NCBI GenBank assembly: GCA_977030845.1
Contig: OZ365113.1
Coordinates: 39,556,001 to 39,620,000, forward strand
DNA: 64,000 bases
DNA from: Fimbriosthenelais zetlandica
Taxonomy: Eukaryota
Reading direction: 5' to 3'
Part shown: in pieces, positions 2,851 to 46,999 of the stretch
Layout of the letters: each line of letters starts with the position of its first letter
Position numbering within the stretch: the stretch's first letter is position 1
Notes under the pieces: model-generated
Databases searched by the model: none
What the model saw: only the letters and a program-made list of their open reading frames with translations
Told to the model about the DNA's origin: nothing
Position numbers and translations under genes: made by a program

Positions 2851-4607
2851 TTATAAGGAACGATGGCAGAGAGGCGCATTTCCACATCCGCCTTCCTGAT
2901 GCTTTTGAAGCAGAGAGTTTCTAGAGAATGACTTGGAGCACACATGGCAGTTGTACTTCTTAATGTCTGTGTGTGTCTGGAGGTGAGCCCTCAGGTTGGA
3001 CCTGTCAGCAAATGACCTTCCACAGTGACTACACTGGAAGGGCTTTTCTCCTGTGTGCGTGCGCATATGACCCTGGAGGAGCCAGGGCCTGGAGAAGGCC
3101 TTACCACACAGGTGACACTTACAGGGCAGGGTGTGGGTGCGGATGTGCATCTTTAAGGCTCCCTGGCTGACGTATTTCTTGTCACAGTGTTTGCAGCTGT
3201 ATTCTTTCTTGATGAGGGCAGTACAATGGAACTGCTTGTGCTTAGAGAGACCACTGAATGTGGCATAGCTCTTGCTGCAAGCCTCGCATTGATACCTTGG
3301 TGGTTCGCCGTCCCTGCGCTTCCTTGGCGTCTCCATCTGCGAATGCATTTGTCCGTCCATTTCCATGGGTACTGGATAACGATCCTGATTCCATGGGAAG
3401 TTAGGGCTCTGGCGTGGAGTGACAGGAGTTGCAGGATGGGCGTGGGATGATGCTCTTGGATGGTGAACAGGACTCAAACAGATCTCTGATGGAGACCTGT
3501 CACTGACTGGAGACATGACCGGGGACACCGGCAAGCGGGTAGGCACCGGGGAAATGACATGAGGGGAAGTAGGTGAAGCTGGATGGTAAGGGGAAATAGC
3601 ACCGGGTGAAGTAGGAGTCGGAGGGGTTGCCATAGTAATCCCCTGAAGACGGGATTCAACAGCTTTGATGTGAAGGTCCTGAAGCCGCTTAAAGCTGAGG
3701 GCCAGGTAGGGGAGGTGCATCTCGGGGGAGAGACCAGTTGGGGCCCAGTGGTACTGTGCGTGGTGCTTGTGGTGGTGGCCTGGCTCAGGCGAGAGGCTGG
3801 GGGACCTGAGGGGGCTAGAGGAGGCATTGGAGGAGGCTGGTGAGGGGAGAGGAGCAGTGAGGGAGTAGTTGATGGGTTCTGGAGTAACAGAGCCATGGGA
3901 AGATCCCCTGGATGGGCTCCGGCTGTCGGTGTGGCTCCGTGAGGAAGGACTGGTACTGCAAGTACTCGATTCATCGTCACGGGAAGAAGCTTCACAAAGC
4001 TTAGCTGTTAAACAGAAGAAAAGAGAGAACATGAATATCAAGCTATTTGGATGTATTAACACACTATTATAAGGTAGATGTCCTGGTGAGGCAGTCCTGA
4101 TAACCAGCGCCAGGTACTGAGATGCAGACATATAGTGAACTAATGGGATGGTTACGCATGACGGACCACACCCACGCACCCGAAGAGGTGGACAAGAAGT
4201 GGGTTTGTTGGTATACATAGGCCCATCTTCAGCGATGCGGCAAGGCACCAATACAAACTTAATGATAAACTATTTTAACTGTTTAAATTAAAATAGTGTA
4301 TATAAAGCATTTGCTAATGTGTTAAGTGCAATGGTAAACATATGGGATAGCCATCACGGACCATGTCTGGTAAGACTTAATAAATGATAATGTAAAATGA
4401 TAATAAAGATTAAAGTGAGATAAAATGAGATAACTTACCAGGTGAGAATATGACTGGTGGAATGAGTGAGATCCTTGTATTGATGGAAGGATCCTGTATC
4501 TGTTGGGAGACTGGTGAGAGGAGGCCTTCCCGGCACTCCATATCGATAGTTCTAGGCATGCCGAGAACTGAGGCAGCCTTCTTCTTCACTAGAAAGGACC
4601 TTGGCAT
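2851..4607 (-). CDS. snail: Snail-family zinc-finger transcriptional repressor, paralog A; complement(join(2851..4004,4439..4607)), 440 aa
   Basis: Exon 1 starts AAAG-ATG at 4607 and encodes canonical [13 protein letters not shown]. Donor CCTG|GTAAGT (intron from 4438). Acceptor is a pyrimidine tract + TAACAG| ending at 4005. The phase-1 junction gives GCT (Ala), in frame with ORF 2851..4251. 169+1154=1323 nt, TAA stop. Five C-terminal fingers with Snail signatures ([44 protein letters not shown]2HC-type last finger). Confidence 0.95.
2884..3294 (-). other. Five-finger Snail zinc-finger array of paralog A (137 codons)
   Basis: YQCEAC..H..HC through ..KHQEGGC. Colinear without indels with 19894..20304 (offset 17010) and 40786..41196. 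Confidence 0.95.
4005..4438 (-). other. Phase-1 GT-AG intron of paralog A (434 bp)
   Basis: GTAAGT donor and pyrimidine-tract/CAG acceptor; removing it joins SNAG and zinc fingers in frame. Confidence 0.9.
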
Positions 4608-10650: not shown

Positions 10651-12452
10651 CAGTGTCGCGCCCCAACAGAAAGTTTACACCATGATTCGGAGCTCTCTAA
10701 TTGGAACCATGGAGACGGGCATGTTAACCCACGACCTGGGACCAGCCCACATGTTCTGCTTACAAGATACTATATTAAGAAAGATATTTATTTAGCAAAG
10801 ATTCGTGTCTGTATCAGATGGACTGTGATTGAAATTGAAACGTTGGAGGGGTTCCGTGGGAATGAGTGGCGACATCTTGTTCAAACTTGGGGTTTTAACT
10901 TTCACACAAAAGAGACGTGGGGGTTTGGCCTGACCTTGGCTGGATTTGGTGTGACAGACATCGATGCAGACTGCGGTAGAGCCCTCTGGGATGTTGCCTG
11001 ACTGTTTCTGCTCAGTTTCAAAGTTTTCGACCGCCCTCCAGGAGAGAATGGTTAGAAAAAATGTAATGAACATATGTTTCTGAAATGTCACGAACGCGCA
11101 TGTTTACATTGCATGGCTAGTTGTTATTGCACGCAGAAAATTAATTTTGTGACTTTTTGTGTATGCTGCATGGGGAACGGATGTCGGAGCTGGGTGATGA
11201 AATGGTGGGCAAAGAATAATTTCCTTACAATTCAAAGAAGAATGTAAGTCCTAGTAACATAGATTACAAGTATATACTACTTATTCACTGGGACAATTCT
11301 TTTACAAGTTTTGCACAAGCTTAGCACCACTACTCTCTTTTCTCATTATATCCCCGAAGTCAGTGATAGATAGTTTAAAAAAACATTAACCTATATACAA
11401 GTCAACTTTTCCTCAACTATTCCGGACCGAGCATAGTTATTTCTGGGTTCTCTTTTGGGTACATATTATATGAATGTCAAGTACCTATCCCTTCCACACC
11501 TGCCCTCACAAATAGCTAGTATCAATCACTCGTTGCAGGGCTGTTTATATTTGTGTCACCTTCCACCTAGCCAAACCATGACCTTCCATGACGTTCTGAC
11601 GTCACAGACACGTGGTGCGCGCATGCGTTCTGCTTCCTAATGGGAACCAACTCCCAACGTTGTTGTCGATCCCATAATCAATTAGGCAGAACTATAGATC
11701 TTCGCTTCAAAACCTACTCCCAGATGTTTGAAATATTTTCTGTCCCTTATTTTTCATACCCAAAGGGACTGAAGAAGAAATTGTTACGCCCCATGTTCAC
11801 TGAAAAGGTAATAAAATGTCGGTGTAACATTTTAGTTTAGGTATACATGTATGCGTTTAAGCTTTTGTAGACATTCAAATGTCGTCTCTATTGCAGGGTT
11901 TGGATTAAAATTTCCCACTTTTCCACTTGAGTTTATTTAACTGTTGTTTAGAAACTTTTAAAGGGGTCGATAAATCTATATATTAGCCAGTGAACTTGCA
12001 CTATCGCAAGCATTGAAGAGCAGATCTAATGTGGGTTTTGGCTCTGGAGTTGCATTCATTTGTTTATAAATGGTATTGTATATTTAGAGACTGAGTCAGG
12101 CTCTCTTGCCGCGAGGCTACTCCGCCTGTTTGTTGAATGCAGGCAGGTTTTGGCCATTTAGAAACAATCGCATTTGCAGCTCAAGCTCTCCCGAGCCCCT
12201 CACTTGACTGATTGGCTCATTGGCTAGCCTAAGCACCAAGAGTAGTACCATATGTTTTGCACAACTTGCATCACTTACTTCCTTAGTGTCCTAGCTACCT
12301 ACCCCAAATGTTATGTACATATACCCTTTTTGTTACCACCTAAAAAACCACCTAAGGTGCGGAGAGAGGCGGCGATATCGCATATTCAGGTGAGGTTTGA
12401 GACCCATTCACGTAGCCTGTATGTTTTCAATGATGAAGTGAATTAGTGTATA

Positions 12453-12716
12453 GAGGTTTTTCACGAGACGTCCCAGGCGTCATAATACGACGATCCGCCA
12501 TTTTGGACGTATAGCAATGCACGTCTACGACGTTGTCTACGTTCAAACAAACTGCCTTACAAAGTTAGAAATAATAGTAGACAACCCACTAGAAGTTTCC
12601 AAAGTACATGAATGGTGTTCGGACGTACCCTATGTACCCTATAGACGTGCAGTGCTATACGTCCAAAATGGCGGATCGTCTCATTTTGACGCCTGGGACG
12701 TCTCGTGAAAAACCTC
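12453..12716. mobile_element. MITE / non-autonomous DNA transposon, 264 bp, 75-bp terminal inverted repeats, TATA (or TA) target-site duplication
   Basis: TATA-GAGGTTTTTCACGAGACGTCCCAGGCGTCA... / ...TGACGCCTGGGACGTCTCGTGAAAAACCTC-TATA. The arms match at 71/75 by hand alignment. No coding capacity. Confidence 0.9.
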
Positions 12717-13710
12717 TATAGAAGACATTATGTCTGTGCGTATTATAGAGGTTATAGCTATGTGATGGTTGAGGTGTATGGCACGTGGAGATCCTCTATG
12801 TGATAATCCCCGGACTTTATTTAATTAATGGGGGCCTGCTGCGCTGTATACATTACCCCCTCCTAGAGTGGCTCACAGGGGTTCAATGAGAACCATTAAC
12901 TCCTTCCCCTGATGCACCCACTCAGTCCCATGTAAACAACTTTCATCTGCTCTAGTGTTATTCTGATTGGCGATGTGATTTTTTTAAATAAAGCGCGCAA
13001 ATGATTAGCTATAGTTTCCCAAGTTCAGAAGTTCGTTCATAAAGTTGCTTTATGCATATTTGACAAAAATACTGACATCTCCTTCACCTAAGTGACATAG
13101 GCCTCAGGTGGGGAAATCGACACCAAAAGGCACCATTCAAATGATCAGTTTTTTAGCAAGCCCCCATTCGTAAACAATGAAATTAATACAGCATTTTGAA
13201 ATATTTTATATTAAGGATACTGATATATTTAAAAGTTTCATGGTAGTTGCGTGAAAATCCACTTATCTTGGAAGTACAATTCCAATCACCTCAACTGATG
13301 CTCTTTAGACAGCAGTTGCAGGTACACATCCAGCAGGTATGCTGTTAACTTTGATGGTGTGGAATGGACGCCACTTCACATAAACACGGTACCAAGAGAA
13401 TATTAGCTCGAGAGTACTTTCAAACCTGAAGCCATCCACACCTACAACAAAGCTTTCCGACTTCCTCAAGTAATTAATGAATACGCCTGCTTGTGTAATT
13501 ACCCCAGGAAACATTAGAGGAACCGATCGGGGGCTGGCATCAAAAATATTTACCGCGATGCCAGGAGCACGTGTTGTGGTGACGTCATGAGAAATGTGGT
13601 CGCTTTGGCGGTGGTAAAAGGGCGACGCTTGGAAGAGTGTAATGGGTAAATAGGAGGGCGGGGTATTGCTGTTTGATGTTGAGTCTGCTGAAATAGACTT
13701 GCTACACCCA

Positions 13711-19875: not shown

Positions 19876-21982
19876 TTAAACCGATACACCCGGACAACCC
19901 CCATCCTGGTGTTTAAGTAGTAACGACATCCGAGAAAATGTTTTTGAACAGTTTCTGCAGTTGTACTTCTTAATGTCTGTGTGTGTCTGGAGGTGGGCCC
20001 TCAGGTTGGACCTGTCAGCAAATGACCTTCCACAGTGACTACACTGGAAGGGCTTTTCACCTGTATGTGTTCTCACGTGACCCTGGAGGAGCCAGGGCCT
20101 GGAGAAGGCCTTACCACACAGGTGACACTTACAGGGCAGGGTGTGGGTGCGGATGTGCATCTTCAAAGCTCCCAAACTCACGTAATTCTTCTCACAGAAT
20201 TTACAACTGAACTGTTTCTTTATTTGGGAGACACAATGAAACTGTTTGTGTTTGGAAAGTCCACTGAATGTGGCATAACTCTTGTTGCATGCCTCGCATT
20301 GGTATCTGGGTGGGTTCATCGTCCTTCTCGGAGGCTGTTCTTGGCTGAAGTCGATGCCTAGGAAAGTCACTGGTGCACGACTGCGATCTTCACCCCCAGT
20401 CTGTCCTGAATTGTTGCTCCAAGGTCTGCATAGGGATTTCTCCTCTCCCGACTTCACTTCCTTCTTCATTTGTGTGTTTTTCTCCCCATTGACTCCAAGC
20501 TGACCAAAGCCATTCATACCTTTACATTTTTGTGAAGGATCCACATTTGACATCAGTTTACTGATGCTAAACATACCTCCACTTTGGGTATTTGAACCAA
20601 TGTTTGGGCTAAACAGTGCCTTTGGGTTGCCTTGGGTCTTTTGGTTCATCAGGACAACATTTGAATGAGTCTGTTCCGCTGGAGAGGCATTTCTCCATAG
20701 AGCTGATTTGGTCGGGATTCCATTTATAGAGGCATGGGGAGAAGAAAACAAGGTTGATCTTCCACCATGGAAAATATCCACCATTGCAGGATGGGCAGGA
20801 ATAGGTCTAAACACCTGTGGTTTGTGGGGAATAACAGGTCCCCATTTTCCAATGGAATGAGGAGCTTTAATTGGACTTGTCCCAGCTCCTAAAGGACAAC
20901 ACCGACCACCGTGACTGTGGTAGCCATTAAGTTCCTCACCCACTCCGCTGTATGTCGTAGATAACATTGGGTTACTACACAGAGAATCCATTAGCAGTGG
21001 GCTTTGTTGCTGCTGTTGGAAATTAAAACCAAACCTTAATGCATCTTTGGGTATTTCTCCAAACCCAGATGACCTTTTCACGTCACTGATTGTTGGCTGA
21101 ATCCCTAAGAGTGTGGGTTCTCTTCCATTAAAACTTCTCATGCCCGTTGTTCCCCAGGACACGCTGGAGACTGGTTGATCCGTACTGGTCGGCCCTGGAG
21201 GGACACACGGCCTCGGTAAACCGAGAGCGCCGGGAGGAGGGGCCTTGGGATCCGGGAAAGCTGCTTGTGGTGGTGGTGGTGGTGGTGAAGGCGGGGAGGG
21301 AGGAGAAGCGATGGTAGCACCGGTACTACCAACAGGTGTGGCAGGTCTCTGGGGGATACTGGTACCCCGAGCAGGCAGATGTAGGTTACTGGGTTTATTC
21401 TGTGGCCCTTCTTCCTTCTCCTCCTTCATTTGTTGTCCTTGAGCTGAAACAAAAAATGCAATAAATGTATCTTACAAATCCAAGTGGATCACTAAGCTCT
21501 TTTACCTTTTGTTATGGAAGAAAAAATCGCTACTTTAATCATGTTGATTTTCTGGCCTAAAATTATTTGCACAAGCAGGCCTGACAAAACCTCCTCCATT
21601 ATAAGAGACCAATTAAGGTCTTTTTTTAACTTAACTTAGGTGTGCATGTACCCATTTCTAATTCGTGAAAATAATTAATTTTAAGACTGTCATTGAAATC
21701 TAAGATATTTTTTCAACAAATTTAAATAAAGAACTTACTTTGGGTTATACACTGATGGCTCAGTTCCTTCATGATGGCAACATTTCTAGCATTTTCACAC
21801 TCAAGGGTAATCAACGTGGGGACCGAGATTTCTTTTATTCCACTGTCTCCTCCTCCTCTGCCAGTATTTTGTTCTTCTCCAGGCTGCGACCCAACACTTT
21901 CCCCTGATGGTGTCACTGCTCCACCCCCGGAGATGCTGTTACTGCACTTCACCTTGTTCTTGATCAAAAAAGCTCGCGGCAT
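19876..21982 (-). CDS. snail: Snail-family zinc-finger transcriptional repressor, paralog B; complement(join(19876..21443,21739..21982)), 603 aa
   Basis: ATG at 21982 encodes SNAG-like MPRAFLIKN. Donor CAAA|GTAAGT (intron from 21738). Acceptor TTTTTTGTTTCAG| ending at 21444. The phase-1 junction gives ACT, then QGQQMKEE, in frame with ORF 19876..21429. 244+1568=1812 nt. Five Snail-type fingers at 19894..20304. Confidence 0.95.
19894..20304 (-). other. Five-finger Snail zinc-finger array of paralog B
   Basis: [24 protein letters not shown] ... [15 protein letters not shown]. Confidence 0.95.
21444..21738 (-). other. Phase-1 GT-AG intron of paralog B (295 bp)
   Basis: GTAAGT donor, T-rich/CAG acceptor, in-frame junction. 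Confidence 0.9.
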
Positions 21983-26000: not shown

Positions 26001-29000
26001 TGCACATAATCACATTGTGCGCTCATTTCATTAGGTATGCTCAATCTAGCCCTCCCACTGGGATGGGTTTGCTTTGATTCTTTGGCTACCGAACGATTTC
26101 AAGGTATTTAACACCAATTATTTAGTTGTATGTAAATCTATCGGAGATTATTCAAGCATCAACTCCAGACTGGTTGATGGTTGTTGAAGGGGAAATAAGT
26201 ACCGATAGTCTAATTCAATGAACGCGTTTCATAGATGAATTAATTCCTATATGTTACCTCAATTGTTCATTTTGGAGTTTTTCTATGTACCATCAGGGTC
26301 TGAACAAAGTTTCATTACATAAAAGCTATATTTCTTACAATAACGGGATAATTCTCAGCATAATTTGAATTCCGACGTTCTACGAACTTGTCCGAATTCC
26401 CAAGCATTTCAGAAATACCATTGAATATTTTCTCAGATACTTTTTACTTCTTGAAGTAACAGAATTCCCAGAAATTCTCAAATAATTTCTGTCCACGTCT
26501 CGTGTTAAACAGCTTAAGTTATTGACAAACAGCAACAACTGATGATGAGAAACCTGAACTATTCACGATGAAAACAAGACTTGAGTTGAGAGAGTTTGGC
26601 TTCCCAGGCACGTGCTTGCTACAGGCTCCCCCTGCCTGATAGTTATTCCAATAGGAACAAGAAAGGCACCTAAGATATCACCATCCTCCTCTTTTCAACC
26701 ATTCAATCAGTTCTTTGTCTGTCCGACTGGTATGCCATTGAAGCGTGAGAAGATGCTTTGATGACAGAAATCAGAGAAGACAAAAATGGAAAACAGAACA
26801 TGTTATGTACACATACATGCATTCATCTTTCATTTGTGACATTTAATTTCCATGACTTCTTATGGATGCTTTTCCTATCTCTTGCGTGCTGAAACATGAT
26901 GCTTTTGTTATGAGGGAAAAGGCAAAGTGTTATGGTCTTGGAGGCATATGCTTTGAAGGTTTATGAATTGTCATTGGGCTGGCCTTTTCACACCTTTTCA
27001 TTGACTCGACAAAGACCTGCATGACAGCAACCTTTCTGTTTAACTGTTGAGATTGACGAATGGGTCAGAAATCAAATGGCTATAGATCTATAGCTCAGGC
27101 CAGTATAATTATATAAAGAGTTAAAACATCAAGGTTTTTACCTTTGGCCGATTATTCTTCAGCTGAAATTCCAAGCATATAGAAACATGGATTGTGTTAT
27201 ATTATTATCATTCCCCAGCCAGCATTCATTCCCCAACCTACTTCTCACTGACGTACAATTACTCCACACACGAGTTGACAGACCACCCTTCATCCCGAGC
27301 CTCACATCTTATACCCTCAAAGCACCCGTCCATGGAAAAAAAACCTACCAAAGACAGGATTAACTCCCTCTGTTTTGGTTAGCCTAATCCTTTCGTATTA
27401 TCACCGATAGCACCCTACACAATTTTTGCACATGCTTCTTGCCCTCAAAGCGTATTAACTGTGATTTATTTTGTTGTAAAGAACGAACCAAGAAGAAAAG
27501 GATGAAAGTTGGGCCACAGCGCCGCTCACGGGTTGCTATAGAACAAGTGGGGCGGATGTTTACTTTGACCTCATGTCAATCAACTTCCGGAAGAAGGTGT
27601 ATCACGTGGCCTTAGTCCCTGACAAGGATTTTACAATCTTTGAAGATACTAAAACAACCAACTCTCCGGGTAGATTTTATGTTCTCGACATCACCCGACA
27701 ACATCTTACATATTTCTCTGAAATATGGTTCCTGTCCCCGCCTTTCTCCCCGTCTCTCGGCATAAGGAGGCCATTTGTATTTTTGCTGTGAAAACATCGA
27801 AGTAAATATGATTTATAACTGTCCAGTTATACCTGTGATCGATAAGTATGTTTTCAATGCGAGCTCATGGAAATATGGAGCTAGTCACTTGTGTGCACTA
27901 ACTCGAGGTAAAAAGTCAACAAAAAAGAAAAATGTTCGTAACTTGTATCTTATATATCCTTGAAGTTTTTCTCTGGTTGTATAAACCTACAGGATTTGTT
28001 TAGGTTTTCCTCGGGAATAAGAAAACACTTTCAGGATATTCACTTGGTGAATATGGAATAGCTTTACAGTAACATATTGGGTGTGGACATATATTTATGA
28101 GTGTTAATTTCTTCCTTTGTGCATGACTGAGGCATTTTCATTCATATTGCCTATCCATACATGACAATACAAAGTAATATTCACAATCATTGAGGTACAG
28201 GGTGGCCTTCCCTGGGGGGATTACAGGGTCTTTATGTCACCCACTTGTCCTGATTTCACTATTCAAGAGAGAAAAACAAAAGACTAGATACATGTCAAGT
28301 GACCATATTTATAACGCATGCGTAAACTGTCCTGCAAAAAAGCTGCTATAACCTCCACATGACTGCTCAAAGAGAAACGTTCACAGGCTGGATGTCACAG
28401 CCATGCATAGATAGCATATGCTCGCCATGTCATTTCTACATGAGTATACATGTAGAACATGTGGTGTGGAACAGCAGGGAAGCGTGCAGTCACAAGCAGG
28501 TGCTTTGATTTCATTTTGAAACAAGTTCCCTTTAATGTTAATTGCTCAGTCAAAGTAACTAATTGCTACTTTGAACAAAGCATATTCCTGAATTATATCG
28601 ATAGTATAATATTTTCGTAGTAACCGATTTTATCGCAATATTACTGAAAGCAATACGTGTAACGCAATTGTGACTTAATGAGCTCTGGTCACAGATTTAA
28701 TTTTTCTCCCAAAAGATGAAAGTACCCAAAACTGATTAAAAATATAACAATAAAACATAAAACAATTATTATTATTCTACGACTGAGAACCCCCTGTTTC
28801 TGTCACATACAAAGTTGGTGTAAAGTCACCCGCTCCACTTGATTTATAAGGGTGCAGAGACTCTATCGGGGTTAAATGTTTACTTTAGTCCGAGGCCTTT
28901 ACCTTGCCACTTCCCACCCTGGGGTCATCTATACCTTCGCCTCAGTCATTGCCCTCAGGTGACAACAGAAGGTCCAATTATCATGTAATGACCTTCTCAT

Positions 29001-40770: not shown

Positions 40771-43700
40771 TTACATGCTGTTAACGCATCCACCATCTTC
40801 ATGTTTCAAAAGCAATGAATTCCGTGAGAATGACTTTGAACAGTTTCTGCAGTTGTACTTCTTAATGTCTGTGTGTGTCTGGAGGTGGGCCCTCAGGTTG
40901 GACCTGTCAGCAAATGACCTTCCACAGTGACTACACTGGAAGGGCTTTTCACCTGTATGTGTTCTCACATGACCCTGGAGGAGCCAGGGCCTGGAGAAGG
41001 CCTTACCACACAGGTGACACTTACAGGGCAGGGTGTGGGTGCGGATGTGCATCTTCAAAGCTCCCAAACTCACATAGGTTTTGGGACAGTACTTACAGCT
41101 GAACTCTTTCTTAATAGTAGCTGTGCAATGAAACTGCTTGTGCTTAGACAGACCGCCATGAGTTGCATAACTCTTTTTGCATGCATCACATTGATATCGT
41201 GGTGGGTCATTTTCCCTGCTCTTCTTAGTAACCACTGCTCTGAAATCTGCCATATCCAGTGGGACATTCTCAATGCCCCAGGGGATCTTCGGCTTGATGC
41301 GCTCTCCATCTGTATCATCATCTTTCCATGATTTACTACCATTGCTGTCTTTGATGGCAGCCATATTGATGTGCGAGTTATGGCCGACATAGCCAGGGGC
41401 TACTGCATGGTACCTGCTCTCATATTGTCCTTTCTGGTAATCAGAGACCCGTGGTTCACTGATTTTCTGGGCGAGGGGAGCATTGGTGGAGGGAGACAGA
41501 CGCTCTGTGAGGAAGGATGGGATGGGTGGTGGAGGTTGGGGAGGAGATGGAGGAGACAGTCTTTGGTATCCTGGAGAAGAAGCTGGATCCAAGTCAGGAG
41601 ATGTCATTGCCAGGAAGGCTTCTGACCCGACAGAGGACGAGCTTCTGTGTGGTGTGTGTGGGAACCCCGGGGCCATTCTTGAGGCGTCCATGTATTGTTC
41701 TTTGGGAGAAACCTGTCGGTTTTGATCAAAAGGATAGGGGATAGACCGAGAAGGCTCCCGGGGCAATGAAGCTTCCTGAGGCAGAGCGGATTCTTGTTTT
41801 ATATCACGTATTTTGTAATGACCTGCAGGGGAAAACCTGCTTCGGTCCTGATGTGGAGGTAAATCAGGCGAGAGACTGAGCATGTTGTGATATGAAGGAG
41901 GGCTAGGGAAAGGCCTGTAGGATCTCTCTCCATAGAACCTTTCCTCATATGTCCCACTAGTGCCATAAACGTCTTCAAAATGAAGAGGTTCCATTTCCCT
42001 GTGTGGGGCCCATATTCTGGATCTGCCATACTGGGCATGGGTAGTCGAGTAGGGAGGAAGTCCATGAGGGGAACGCGTTTGTGGTATCGGCCTGGATGTT
42101 GTAGGTGACCTTGGCCTCAGTGGTGATCTTGACCTCAGCGGAGACCTTGACCTCAATGGTGACCTTGTGAGAGATGGCCTTGACATTAGAGGTGATCTTG
42201 ACCTTGGTGGGGATGAATGCCTTATTGGTGACCGTGAAGGGAAACTTGGTTGAATGCCTTGTGAAGGGAAACTTGGTTGAATGCCTTGTGAAGGGAAACT
42301 TGGTTGAATGCCTTGTGAAGGGAAACTTGGTTGAATGCCTTGTGCTGGGGGCGGGGATGGATAGTGAACCACCTCCCCGGGTGTTTTCTCAATGGTGATC
42401 TTAGTTCCATTCCTGGTAGATGTTATGTAACCAATAGCTTTCAGACCACTGGAGGCAGGTACTGCAGGTGACCGGTAACAGGCCATTTTCTCTGGCTCCA
42501 GGGCAGCGTCCGGAGATGTTTTTCCCATGCCTTGGATGCTGAAGGCTGCAGGTACAAGCCCCTGAGGGGGCGTTAACTTCAGGTTCACGCTGTCGTTCCC
42601 ATACCTTCCTTCTCTGCTTTCCTCTGATCTTCCACCTGAAAATCACAAGAACAAAACCATCAGGTGAGTCAGTACAAAGGACGGGACACTTGTAACAAGG
42701 CTTGGCAGGTGATGCCGTCAAAGACAAGGCCTCTTGGATGGAGGCTATGCTTCCAGCCATTAGCATTATTAGCGCCTCGAGACCTTTCTCAAATTTGTGA
42801 ATTTTCTTCAGGCACTTATTCAAGGAATTTCGGCATCGGATTCATTGTTGTTTCTTTTGATGATCTAATTTGCATTTATTTTTGCCAATGGGTACTACAA
42901 GTTTCTCTTGATAGTAAAAGATTTTAAGATGCTTGAAGGACTCTGGTTTTATATGAATAATTAATGGGAAATAATGTGATTTGATGAAATGGTCAAATGC
43001 ACTTAAAGTTGACCTACGTAGGCCTGCCTACTAAAAGAGTTGAACCTTTTCCATTTTAGTTTGGCTCATAACTACTTAAAACCCAGATATTATCAAATCA
43101 GTGTATTTTATGAGTGATCTATGGAGAGTTTCCAAGTCTACTTGGTTCAGACCAACTACACTAGGTGGCAGGATGTGTCCGCGGAAGGCTAGCCCTCCAC
43201 CTGAATGTAAATGAGTGAGGGATACTCGGGTAGTCGGTGAGGAAGGGACTGGGAGCCAGGTCTCTGCAATGTTATGTTCTAAATACCACCCCCCCCCCCC
43301 CTCCTATCAAACCCCATCCCCTCACTCCACCACCCTCCCCCATCACCTGACGGGGTAGGGTAGGAAATGGTCACACTTGAGCAATTTTATCCCCTGCTTA
43401 AACCTGGCGTCAGTCAAGAGGAACCAGACAATGGGGCCTGGAAATAGTAATGACCGGTCACTGAAAGGGCCAGGAATAAACCAGGAACAGTGGTTTTGTT
43501 ACACCGGGGGAACCCTATAAGCCCCTTTACTGATCTTTGTAATACAAAAATTATGGCATAAATAATAAATAAAATAAAAAATGAAATTATTTTTTCCTAT
43601 ACAGGAGAGAAAGTTATCATATAGATTGAAGCTGGCTCTATAATGACATTACACATGTAGTCTCAGGGATCTCCGCCCCCCCCCCCAACCAGTAGGCCTA

Positions 43701-46892: not shown

Positions 46893-46999
46893 ACCTCCAT
46901 GCAGCCATGCCAGTGACACCTCCATGCAGCCATGCCAGTGACACCTCCATGCAGCCATGCCAGTGACACCTCCATGCAGCCATGCCAGTGACACCTCCA
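46893..46999. repeat. 25-bp minisatellite ACCTCCATGCAGCCATGCCAGTGAC x4.3
   Basis: Four exact copies plus 7 nt, about 2.7 kb upstream of the paralog C start codon. Confidence 0.95.

Follow-up and report, generated by a model that had tools for sequence, protein, structure and literature searches.

Introduction

Interlocus (non-allelic) gene conversion between duplicated genes has been reviewed both as a process and with regard to its homology requirements (PMC3924818, PMC3966225). Conversion tracts need not be continuous: experiments on interlocus conversion yield discontinuous tracts at low frequency (PMC3924818), and those of human non-crossovers have been ascribed to patchy repair of heteroduplex DNA or to template switching (PMC4404656). 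For the Snail family, at least 10 independent duplications were deduced from phylogenies by Kerner et al. (2009), who never mention conversion (PMC2688512), and our search of the literature brought up no report that Snail genes undergo gene conversion or concerted evolution. Here we describe a window of 64,000 nt (contig OZ365113.1, positions 39,556,001 to 39,620,000, of the 447-Mb assembly GCA_977030845.1 of the animal Fimbriosthenelais zetlandica), which holds three Snail-family genes on its minus strand, A, B and C, with one long coding exon apiece. A DNA search of the whole assembly located a fourth tandem copy, D, on the same strand, 26 kb past the end of the window (G000:C19:39646123-39646542; L004/L009). 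All four copies have in common a short stretch of zinc finger-coding DNA for which homogenization by interlocus gene conversion is strongly supported. In A this stretch is broken by an island of 19 nt, of which the simplest reading is an unconverted remnant of A's old sequence.

A near-identical tract broken by a divergent island

Across the 207 nt from 2947 to 3153, A differs from B (19957..20163) at 8 sites—2986, 3049, 3055, 3058, 3061, 3063, 3066 and 3067—and from C (40849..41055) at 7, since C has CAT like A at 3067. The first-pass annotation of the window had counted these 8 mismatches and the 7 against C, placed seven of the eight in 3049..3067 with the remaining one at 2986, and described perfect blocks of 39 nt (2947-2985), 62 nt (2987-3048) and 86 nt (3068-3153) between A and B; each of these figures proved exact. 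Also as described, the seven clustered mismatches sit at the end of the third zinc finger (ZF3; H-M/V-R-T-H) and in the T-G of the TGEKP linker, and include an exchange of Met for Val. The rarity of mismatches within the tract stands against the adjacent finger-coding flanks, where A and B differ at 34 of 150 and 26 of 63 nt, compared with 8 of 207 in the tract. Blocks of 86 and 102 nt lie on the two sides of the island, such that apparently unconverted markers stand between converted ones (Table 1).

In an alignment beginning at PPRYQC, the island occupies codons 78-84. On the coding strand A reads CAT ATG CGC ACG CAC ACA GGA, while B and D read CAC GTG AGA ACA CAT ACA GGT; C follows B and D except for CAT as its first codon. 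Just one of the seven changes between A and B alters an amino acid (Met/Val) and the other six are synonymous.

Clustering of this kind is rarely reached by chance. When 8 mismatches were placed on any of the 207 sites, at least 7 fell within a 19-nt window in 1 of 200,000 draws, and when they were confined to the 73 sites permitting synonymous change, the same occurred in 2 of 200,000. Placement of 7 differing codons on the 66 degenerate codons brought at least 6 of them into a 7-codon window in 29 of 1,000,000 draws. Under a codon-aware null the clustering is significant (P≈1e-5 to 3e-5), and recent duplication and uniform drift, already doubted in the first-pass annotation as sources of such mismatches, are rejected.

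Third codon positions draw the same borders. Outside the island, the tract has A/B differences at 1 of 62 third positions, compared with 40 of 71 in the flanks (Fisher P=4e-13). Within the island 5 of 7 third positions differ, a proportion like that of the flanks (P=0.69) and unlike that of the remaining tract (P=1e-5).

Old genes with a homogenized tract

Within the window, finger DNA is the only stretch that can be aligned between the copies, and synonymous differences (pS) are saturated in the flanks (0.77-1.1), compared with 0-0.06 in the tract. Beyond the fingers, the genes each match different orthologs in other assemblies: A finds its ortholog in P0001 (E=3e-28), C in P0006 (E=2e-18) and D in P0008 and P0010 (E about 1e-25), while B matches P0019 and P0041, with which it has the context [18 protein letters not shown] in common. 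Because these non-finger regions each have orthologs of their own, copies A to D are much older than the tract: the gene duplications go back before a species split, and the finger tract gives the false appearance of a recent duplication confined to this lineage. In a third species (species 3) the orthologs of A, C and B—P0001, P0006 and P0019—stand together on one contig of 581,644 bp. In species 2, a related species, the locus of the B ortholog P0041 (L019) carries a SNAG exon, [11 protein letters not shown].

P0001 is the sole A ortholog found. No others emerged from a search with the A non-finger region, from an exhaustive HMMER search or from a search seeded with P0001 itself. The one HMMER match to the A non-finger region, P0121, is an unrelated repeat protein and was rejected as an ortholog. 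Nor is an A ortholog present in the 28 kb lying downstream of the B ortholog in species 2, so the layout of the cluster may be different in that species. Adjoining the same locus on its downstream side is a reverse-transcriptase element (RVT_1; L019:14141-17723).

The DNA of orthologs was compared for B (L019) and D (L020) of this one related species. There, the two genes are not homogenized in the tract region (pS 0.64-0.78). Both differ from the tract of the present genome at no less than about 70% of synonymous sites (pS up to 1.1), with 3 amino-acid differences from the copies here over codons 50-110. Maximum-likelihood trees change accordingly with the stretch of DNA from which they are built. 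The flanks join D to its ortholog (support 97/95) and B to its own (73/70), while the tract unites A, B, C and D in one clade (98/99).

Single residues tell of the same exchange. The Ser of QCSHC is present in all four copies here, while 6 of 6 orthologs have Ala, and this Ser is a derived substitution that spread through all four genes. Similarly, the His of KCHLC and the Val of GHV are states of the D orthologs that are found here also in B and C; the orthologs of these two genes carry Gln and Ile. The GC content of third codon positions (GC3) reaches 69% in the tract; the flanks of the same copies have 47% and the species-2 orthologs 48% (P=0.004-0.04). GC-biased conversion is expected to leave such a rise. 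The conversion proposed in the first-pass annotation is borne out by synonymous near-identity inside the tract with saturation outside it, and by trees that switch from orthology to species.

Several exchanges of differing extent

The limits of near-identity depend on the pair of copies compared. In nucleotides of the alignment, A is close to B and to C over 150-356, B to D over 132-331 and C to D over 122-331; for B and C the limits are 132-370, a stretch of 239 nt with 1 mismatch. Because these limits differ among the four copies, several conversion events must have occurred. D has codons 41-110 of the tract in common with the others and then continues with its own S-D-V-K-K-Y-S-C, like its ortholog, while past codon 110 T-D-I-K-K-Y-N-C is common to A, B and C. 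Since D keeps its own type there, A must have exchanged its gene-3' block with B or C rather than with D itself. As for the gene-5' block, its His is ultimately of D type.

Hints of endpoints, each from a single site, lie at the gene-5' edge of the island: C, like A, reads CAT in codon 78, and the GGG of D in codon 77 is private to that copy. Against the species-2 sequences, the A island agrees with the D ortholog at 18 of 21 positions and with the B ortholog at 15 of 21, and the island of B and D agrees with the B ortholog at 17 of 21. Synonymous sites are close to saturation between the species, for which reason we give these counts no weight in polarizing the island.

Origin of the island

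The divergence of the island at the level of the flanks, the mostly synonymous nature of its changes and the failure of searches of the assembly to find a donor together point to a remnant of A's former sequence. The probability of 6 synonymous changes among 7 is 0.0015 for a random cluster of mutations, and such a preponderance is what long divergence under purifying selection would be expected to leave. Searches of the 447-Mb assembly for the island with its edges, allowing up to 3 mismatches in 35 nt, or for a 23-nt stretch allowing up to 2, gave no other match, and an outside donor is excluded within the assembly searched. Three Scratch-like loci (L010, L011 and L012) were considered as donors and rejected, for they differ at 8-11 of 36 positions.

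Recurrent conversion among four old tandem Snail genes, with the island left as a remnant in A, is the explanation that we regard as probable. On this explanation the four genes, arranged in tandem on one strand, swap a short finger-coding stretch by recurrent interlocus conversion. Strict conservation of the protein would maintain there the similarity that pairing demands, limiting exchange to about 200-240 nt, while the remainder of each gene has diverged beyond alignment at the DNA level. A would then have been converted on both sides of codons 78-84, with the 19 nt between never overwritten. The hole may have come about through two separate tracts that ended there, or through one heteroduplex that was repaired discontinuously, and would probably be neutral. 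The sequences themselves show the conversion, its several events with their differing limits and an age of the island like that of the flanks; the neutrality of the hole and the way in which it came about are inferred. Once in existence, a patch of 7 mismatches in 19 nt would tend to halt later tracts or the extension of heteroduplex. Simple GC-biased patch repair was rejected as the cause of the hole, A holding G/C at 4 of the sites and A/T at 3. In a single haplotype, two abutting events and one discontinuous tract look alike. The first-pass annotation had offered a choice between two separate events and a tract interrupted where an A-specific residue is retained; of this, conversion stands, and active retention of Met gained no real support.

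The case for retention deserves to be set out nonetheless. Selection might keep the hole, in that tracts replacing the ZF3 Met of A with the Val of B, C and D would be purged, and only recombinants that keep the Met codon, along with synonymous neighbors that hitch-hike with it, would be fixed. The island does contain the sole amino-acid difference of A from the other copies in 69 codons. In species 3, the very same residue makes the sole tract difference between the A ortholog P0001 (Leu) and the B ortholog P0019 (Ile), and it is the sole site at which P0001 departs from both P0019 and P0006 (Ile). The A lineage is unbranched at this site (Met/Leu) and the others are beta-branched (Val/Ile), and Met is rare there, at 1 of 111 Snail-family matches. 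However, Met itself is not conserved: fixation in orthologs, raised in the first-pass annotation as a point to check, does not hold, the only A ortholog found having Leu, and the sample comprises two species. The site is labile across the 111 family matches (I 83, V 15, L 12, M 1), and the Scratch-like pair L010/L011 likewise has Val versus Met here; the change looks conservative. The residue after the first zinc-binding His lies outside the base-contacting positions of the helix (-1, 2, 3, 6). A neutral remnant accounts for the data equally well, and selection for Met seems to us an unlikely, though not negligible, cause of the hole. A later origin of the island, after full conversion of the tract, is very improbable. 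Mutations do sometimes alter several neighboring bases at once, and the genome offers more than 170 matches to C2H2 fingers with an H-T-G-E-K-P linker as conceivable sources of a micro-conversion from another zinc-finger gene; yet the assembly contains no matching donor, the Scratch-like loci being the nearest. A multi-nucleotide mutation, for its part, would have to produce the synonymous excess given above and a divergence equal to that of the old flanks.

Two further explanations dispense with conversion altogether. Selection at the nucleotide level, whether for extreme codon preference, for an RNA element or for an overlapping function, might hold the copies alike in what is the most conserved portion of Snail proteins, and the tract does open with 30 nt that are identical in the species-2 D ortholog. 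But the species-2 orthologs encode nearly the same protein and differ at most synonymous sites, the four genes of this genome group together nowhere but in the tract, and all four have the derived Ser, which renders such constraint scarcely credible. Because the copies are known from assembled sequence alone, it is also conceivable that assembly or polishing corrected the copies with reads that came from a single paralog and so gave them a look of identity except for a patch. Against this, the identical stretch measures just 200-240 nt and is embedded at four places in unique, well-diverged flanks; its limits differ by pair and private single differences persist, neither of which mis-polishing would give; and the raised GC3 and the common derived Ser are biological signatures. 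An assembly artefact is therefore judged unlikely, and very much so, on an argument from the sequence pattern.

A different way for the hole to arise would lie in the DNA of the island itself, which in A is nearly coextensive with a perfect alternating pyrimidine/purine run. At the corresponding place B, C and D alternate for at most 9 nt, and three runs of at least 18 nt occur in the 64-kb window, the others beginning at 26804 and 53469. Alternating runs are of a kind prone to form Z-DNA. Acting in cis, the run might stall strand exchange or the extension of heteroduplex, such that tracts end there from either side, an idea that we consider a long shot; by our own count, codon choice for the peptide H-M-R-T-H-T would yield such a run with a chance of about 1 in 12. 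Tracts in which purines and pyrimidines alternate have been observed alongside conversion (PMC3966225). Were the idea true, a configuration of synonymous codons would shield one codon block from concerted evolution.

Several considerations weigh against recurrent conversion with a neutral remnant, and should be held beside the evidence in its favor. All of that evidence comes from one haplotype of one assembly. At the nucleotide level, donor and direction are masked by near-saturated synonymous sites between species. The one residue of the 69 codons by which A and B differ in protein is also the residue that separates A (Leu) from B (Ile) in species 3, and this coincidence of Met/Val and Leu/Ile would fit selection rather than neutrality. 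Finally, a first event at about 75-80% identity is expected to be rare (MEPS, MESH; PMC3966225).

The Snail gene cluster

Assignment of A, B and C to the Snail family follows from the combination of a SNAG motif, five fingers, a match to SNAI1 and named database matches. A short upstream open reading frame (ORF) with a SNAG start precedes each gene, and opens in B with [10 protein letters not shown] at 21982. In A and B the start resembles MPRSFLVKK, the form of SNAG that marks the Snail family. The SNAG exon is probably spliced to the main exon, and the 5' portion of the main frame of A may be intronic. Each gene ends in five C2H2 fingers (Pfam zf-C2H2, E=2e-30) with Cys and His intact throughout. 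The finger region matches human SNAI1 (chain 3w5k_B) in one unbroken piece over residues 124-263 (E=2e-57), and the named matches are lophotrochozoan and insect proteins: snail1 of Capitella, snail2 of Lottia and Crepidula, escargot and worniu. The coordinates of the genes and of the features within them are collected in Table 1.

Table 1. Features of the window; tract and blocks are named as the proposed conversion would have them, and coordinates count from the first letter of the window
Feature	Coordinates	Strand	Remarks
Snail paralog A, main coding exon	2851..4251	-	open frame including the stop codon at 2851-2853
Putative first exon of A with SNAG repressor motif	4410..4607	-	ORF opens [10 protein letters not shown] at 4607
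Five zinc fingers of A	2884..3294	-	pattern positions, Pfam zf-C2H2
ZF1 of A	3223-3294	-	
ZF2 of A	3133-3201	-	
ZF3 of A	3055-3123	-	
ZF4 of A	2971-3039	-	
ZF5 of A	2884-2955	-	
Conversion tract in A	2947..3153	-	69 codons; starts at the end of ZF2 and runs as far as the first Cys of ZF5; common to B, C and D
Gene-5' converted block	3068..3153	-	86 nt; A = B = C; D has one private change adjoining the island
Divergent island	3049..3067	-	19 nt, codons H-M-R-T-H-T-G; A's own unconverted sequence
Gene-3' converted block	2947..3048	-	102 nt; one synonymous mismatch, at 2986 (A GCT; B, C, D GCC)
Alternating pyrimidine/purine run	3052..3069	.	18 nt, perfect; nearly coextensive with the island; A only
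Snail paralog B, main coding exon	19876..21429	-	ORF; species-2 ortholog is L019/P0041
B tract at the B-C extent	19943..20181	-	contains 19957..20163, matching A
Snail paralog C, main coding exon	40771..42588	-	ORF; N-terminal match P0006 (species 3), E=2e-18
C tract at the B-C extent	40835..41073	-	contains 40849..41055, matching A

Several other features of the cluster may be recorded. A has a conserved N-terminal motif at 3637..3726 on the minus strand, around [16 protein letters not shown], which is present also in D, P0001, P0019 and P0010; in B and C a pattern search gave no instance of it. Perfect direct repeats with 57-nt matches occur at 42234..42344 and 46893..46999, with offsets of 54 and 50 nt, respectively, and the former encodes QGIQPSFPS units in the N-terminal region of C. 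Between A and B lies an inverted repeat (12449..12527 and 12642..12720) with arms of 79 nt that are 95% identical.

The three Scratch-like genes are located on the same chromosome, far from the cluster. L010 (G000:C19:1558247-1558660) and L011 (G000:C19:1668316-1668729) lie 110 kb apart in opposite orientation, with 85.8% identity over 423 nt of finger DNA, and L012 is situated at C19:20383914.

Significance and comparison with known systems

Snail phylogenies rest mostly on the fingers, and where conversion is confined to this DNA-binding domain, paralogs of great age can pass for recent, lineage-specific duplicates. Beyond the family, the island represents a small natural case of discontinuous or abutting tracts that have gone to fixation. 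Population data from this locus could reveal how finely conversion mosaics are made up, and whether one residue by itself can be protected.

Patchy interlocus conversion is an ordinary, well-known mechanism, and the locus described here resembles other converting tandem duplicates in most respects. Synonymous identity with sharp borders between otherwise saturated paralogs, grouping according to species within the tract and according to orthology elsewhere, raised GC3, and close copies on the same strand are all features of that system. The differences are of degree: the tract is very short at 200-240 nt, the copies are very old, the identity at the outset must have been close to, or less than, the roughly 92% that is usually considered necessary, and four genes take part with nested tract limits. 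As in discontinuous tracts seen elsewhere, converted markers stand on either side of unconverted ones over a short distance. Unlike those tracts, the pattern here is a fixed evolutionary outcome and not a single observed event, so that two independent events are possible; moreover, the hole is only 19 nt long, and the alleles retained in it are unlike those of simple GC-biased repair.

Differences kept by selection between converting paralogs are known from the spectral-tuning sites of the primate red and green opsins and from the RHD/RHCE pair. The island in A is like these in that a single amino-acid difference survives in a homogenized tract, and unlike them in that the difference is a conservative Met/Val exchange at a labile site, where the sole A ortholog has Leu. 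Within the Snail family itself, the cluster accords with the picture drawn by Kerner et al. (2009), with several paralogs that encode SNAG and five fingers in a lophotrochozoan-like genome. It departs from that picture on the age of the duplications, over which the non-finger regions contradict the finger tract.

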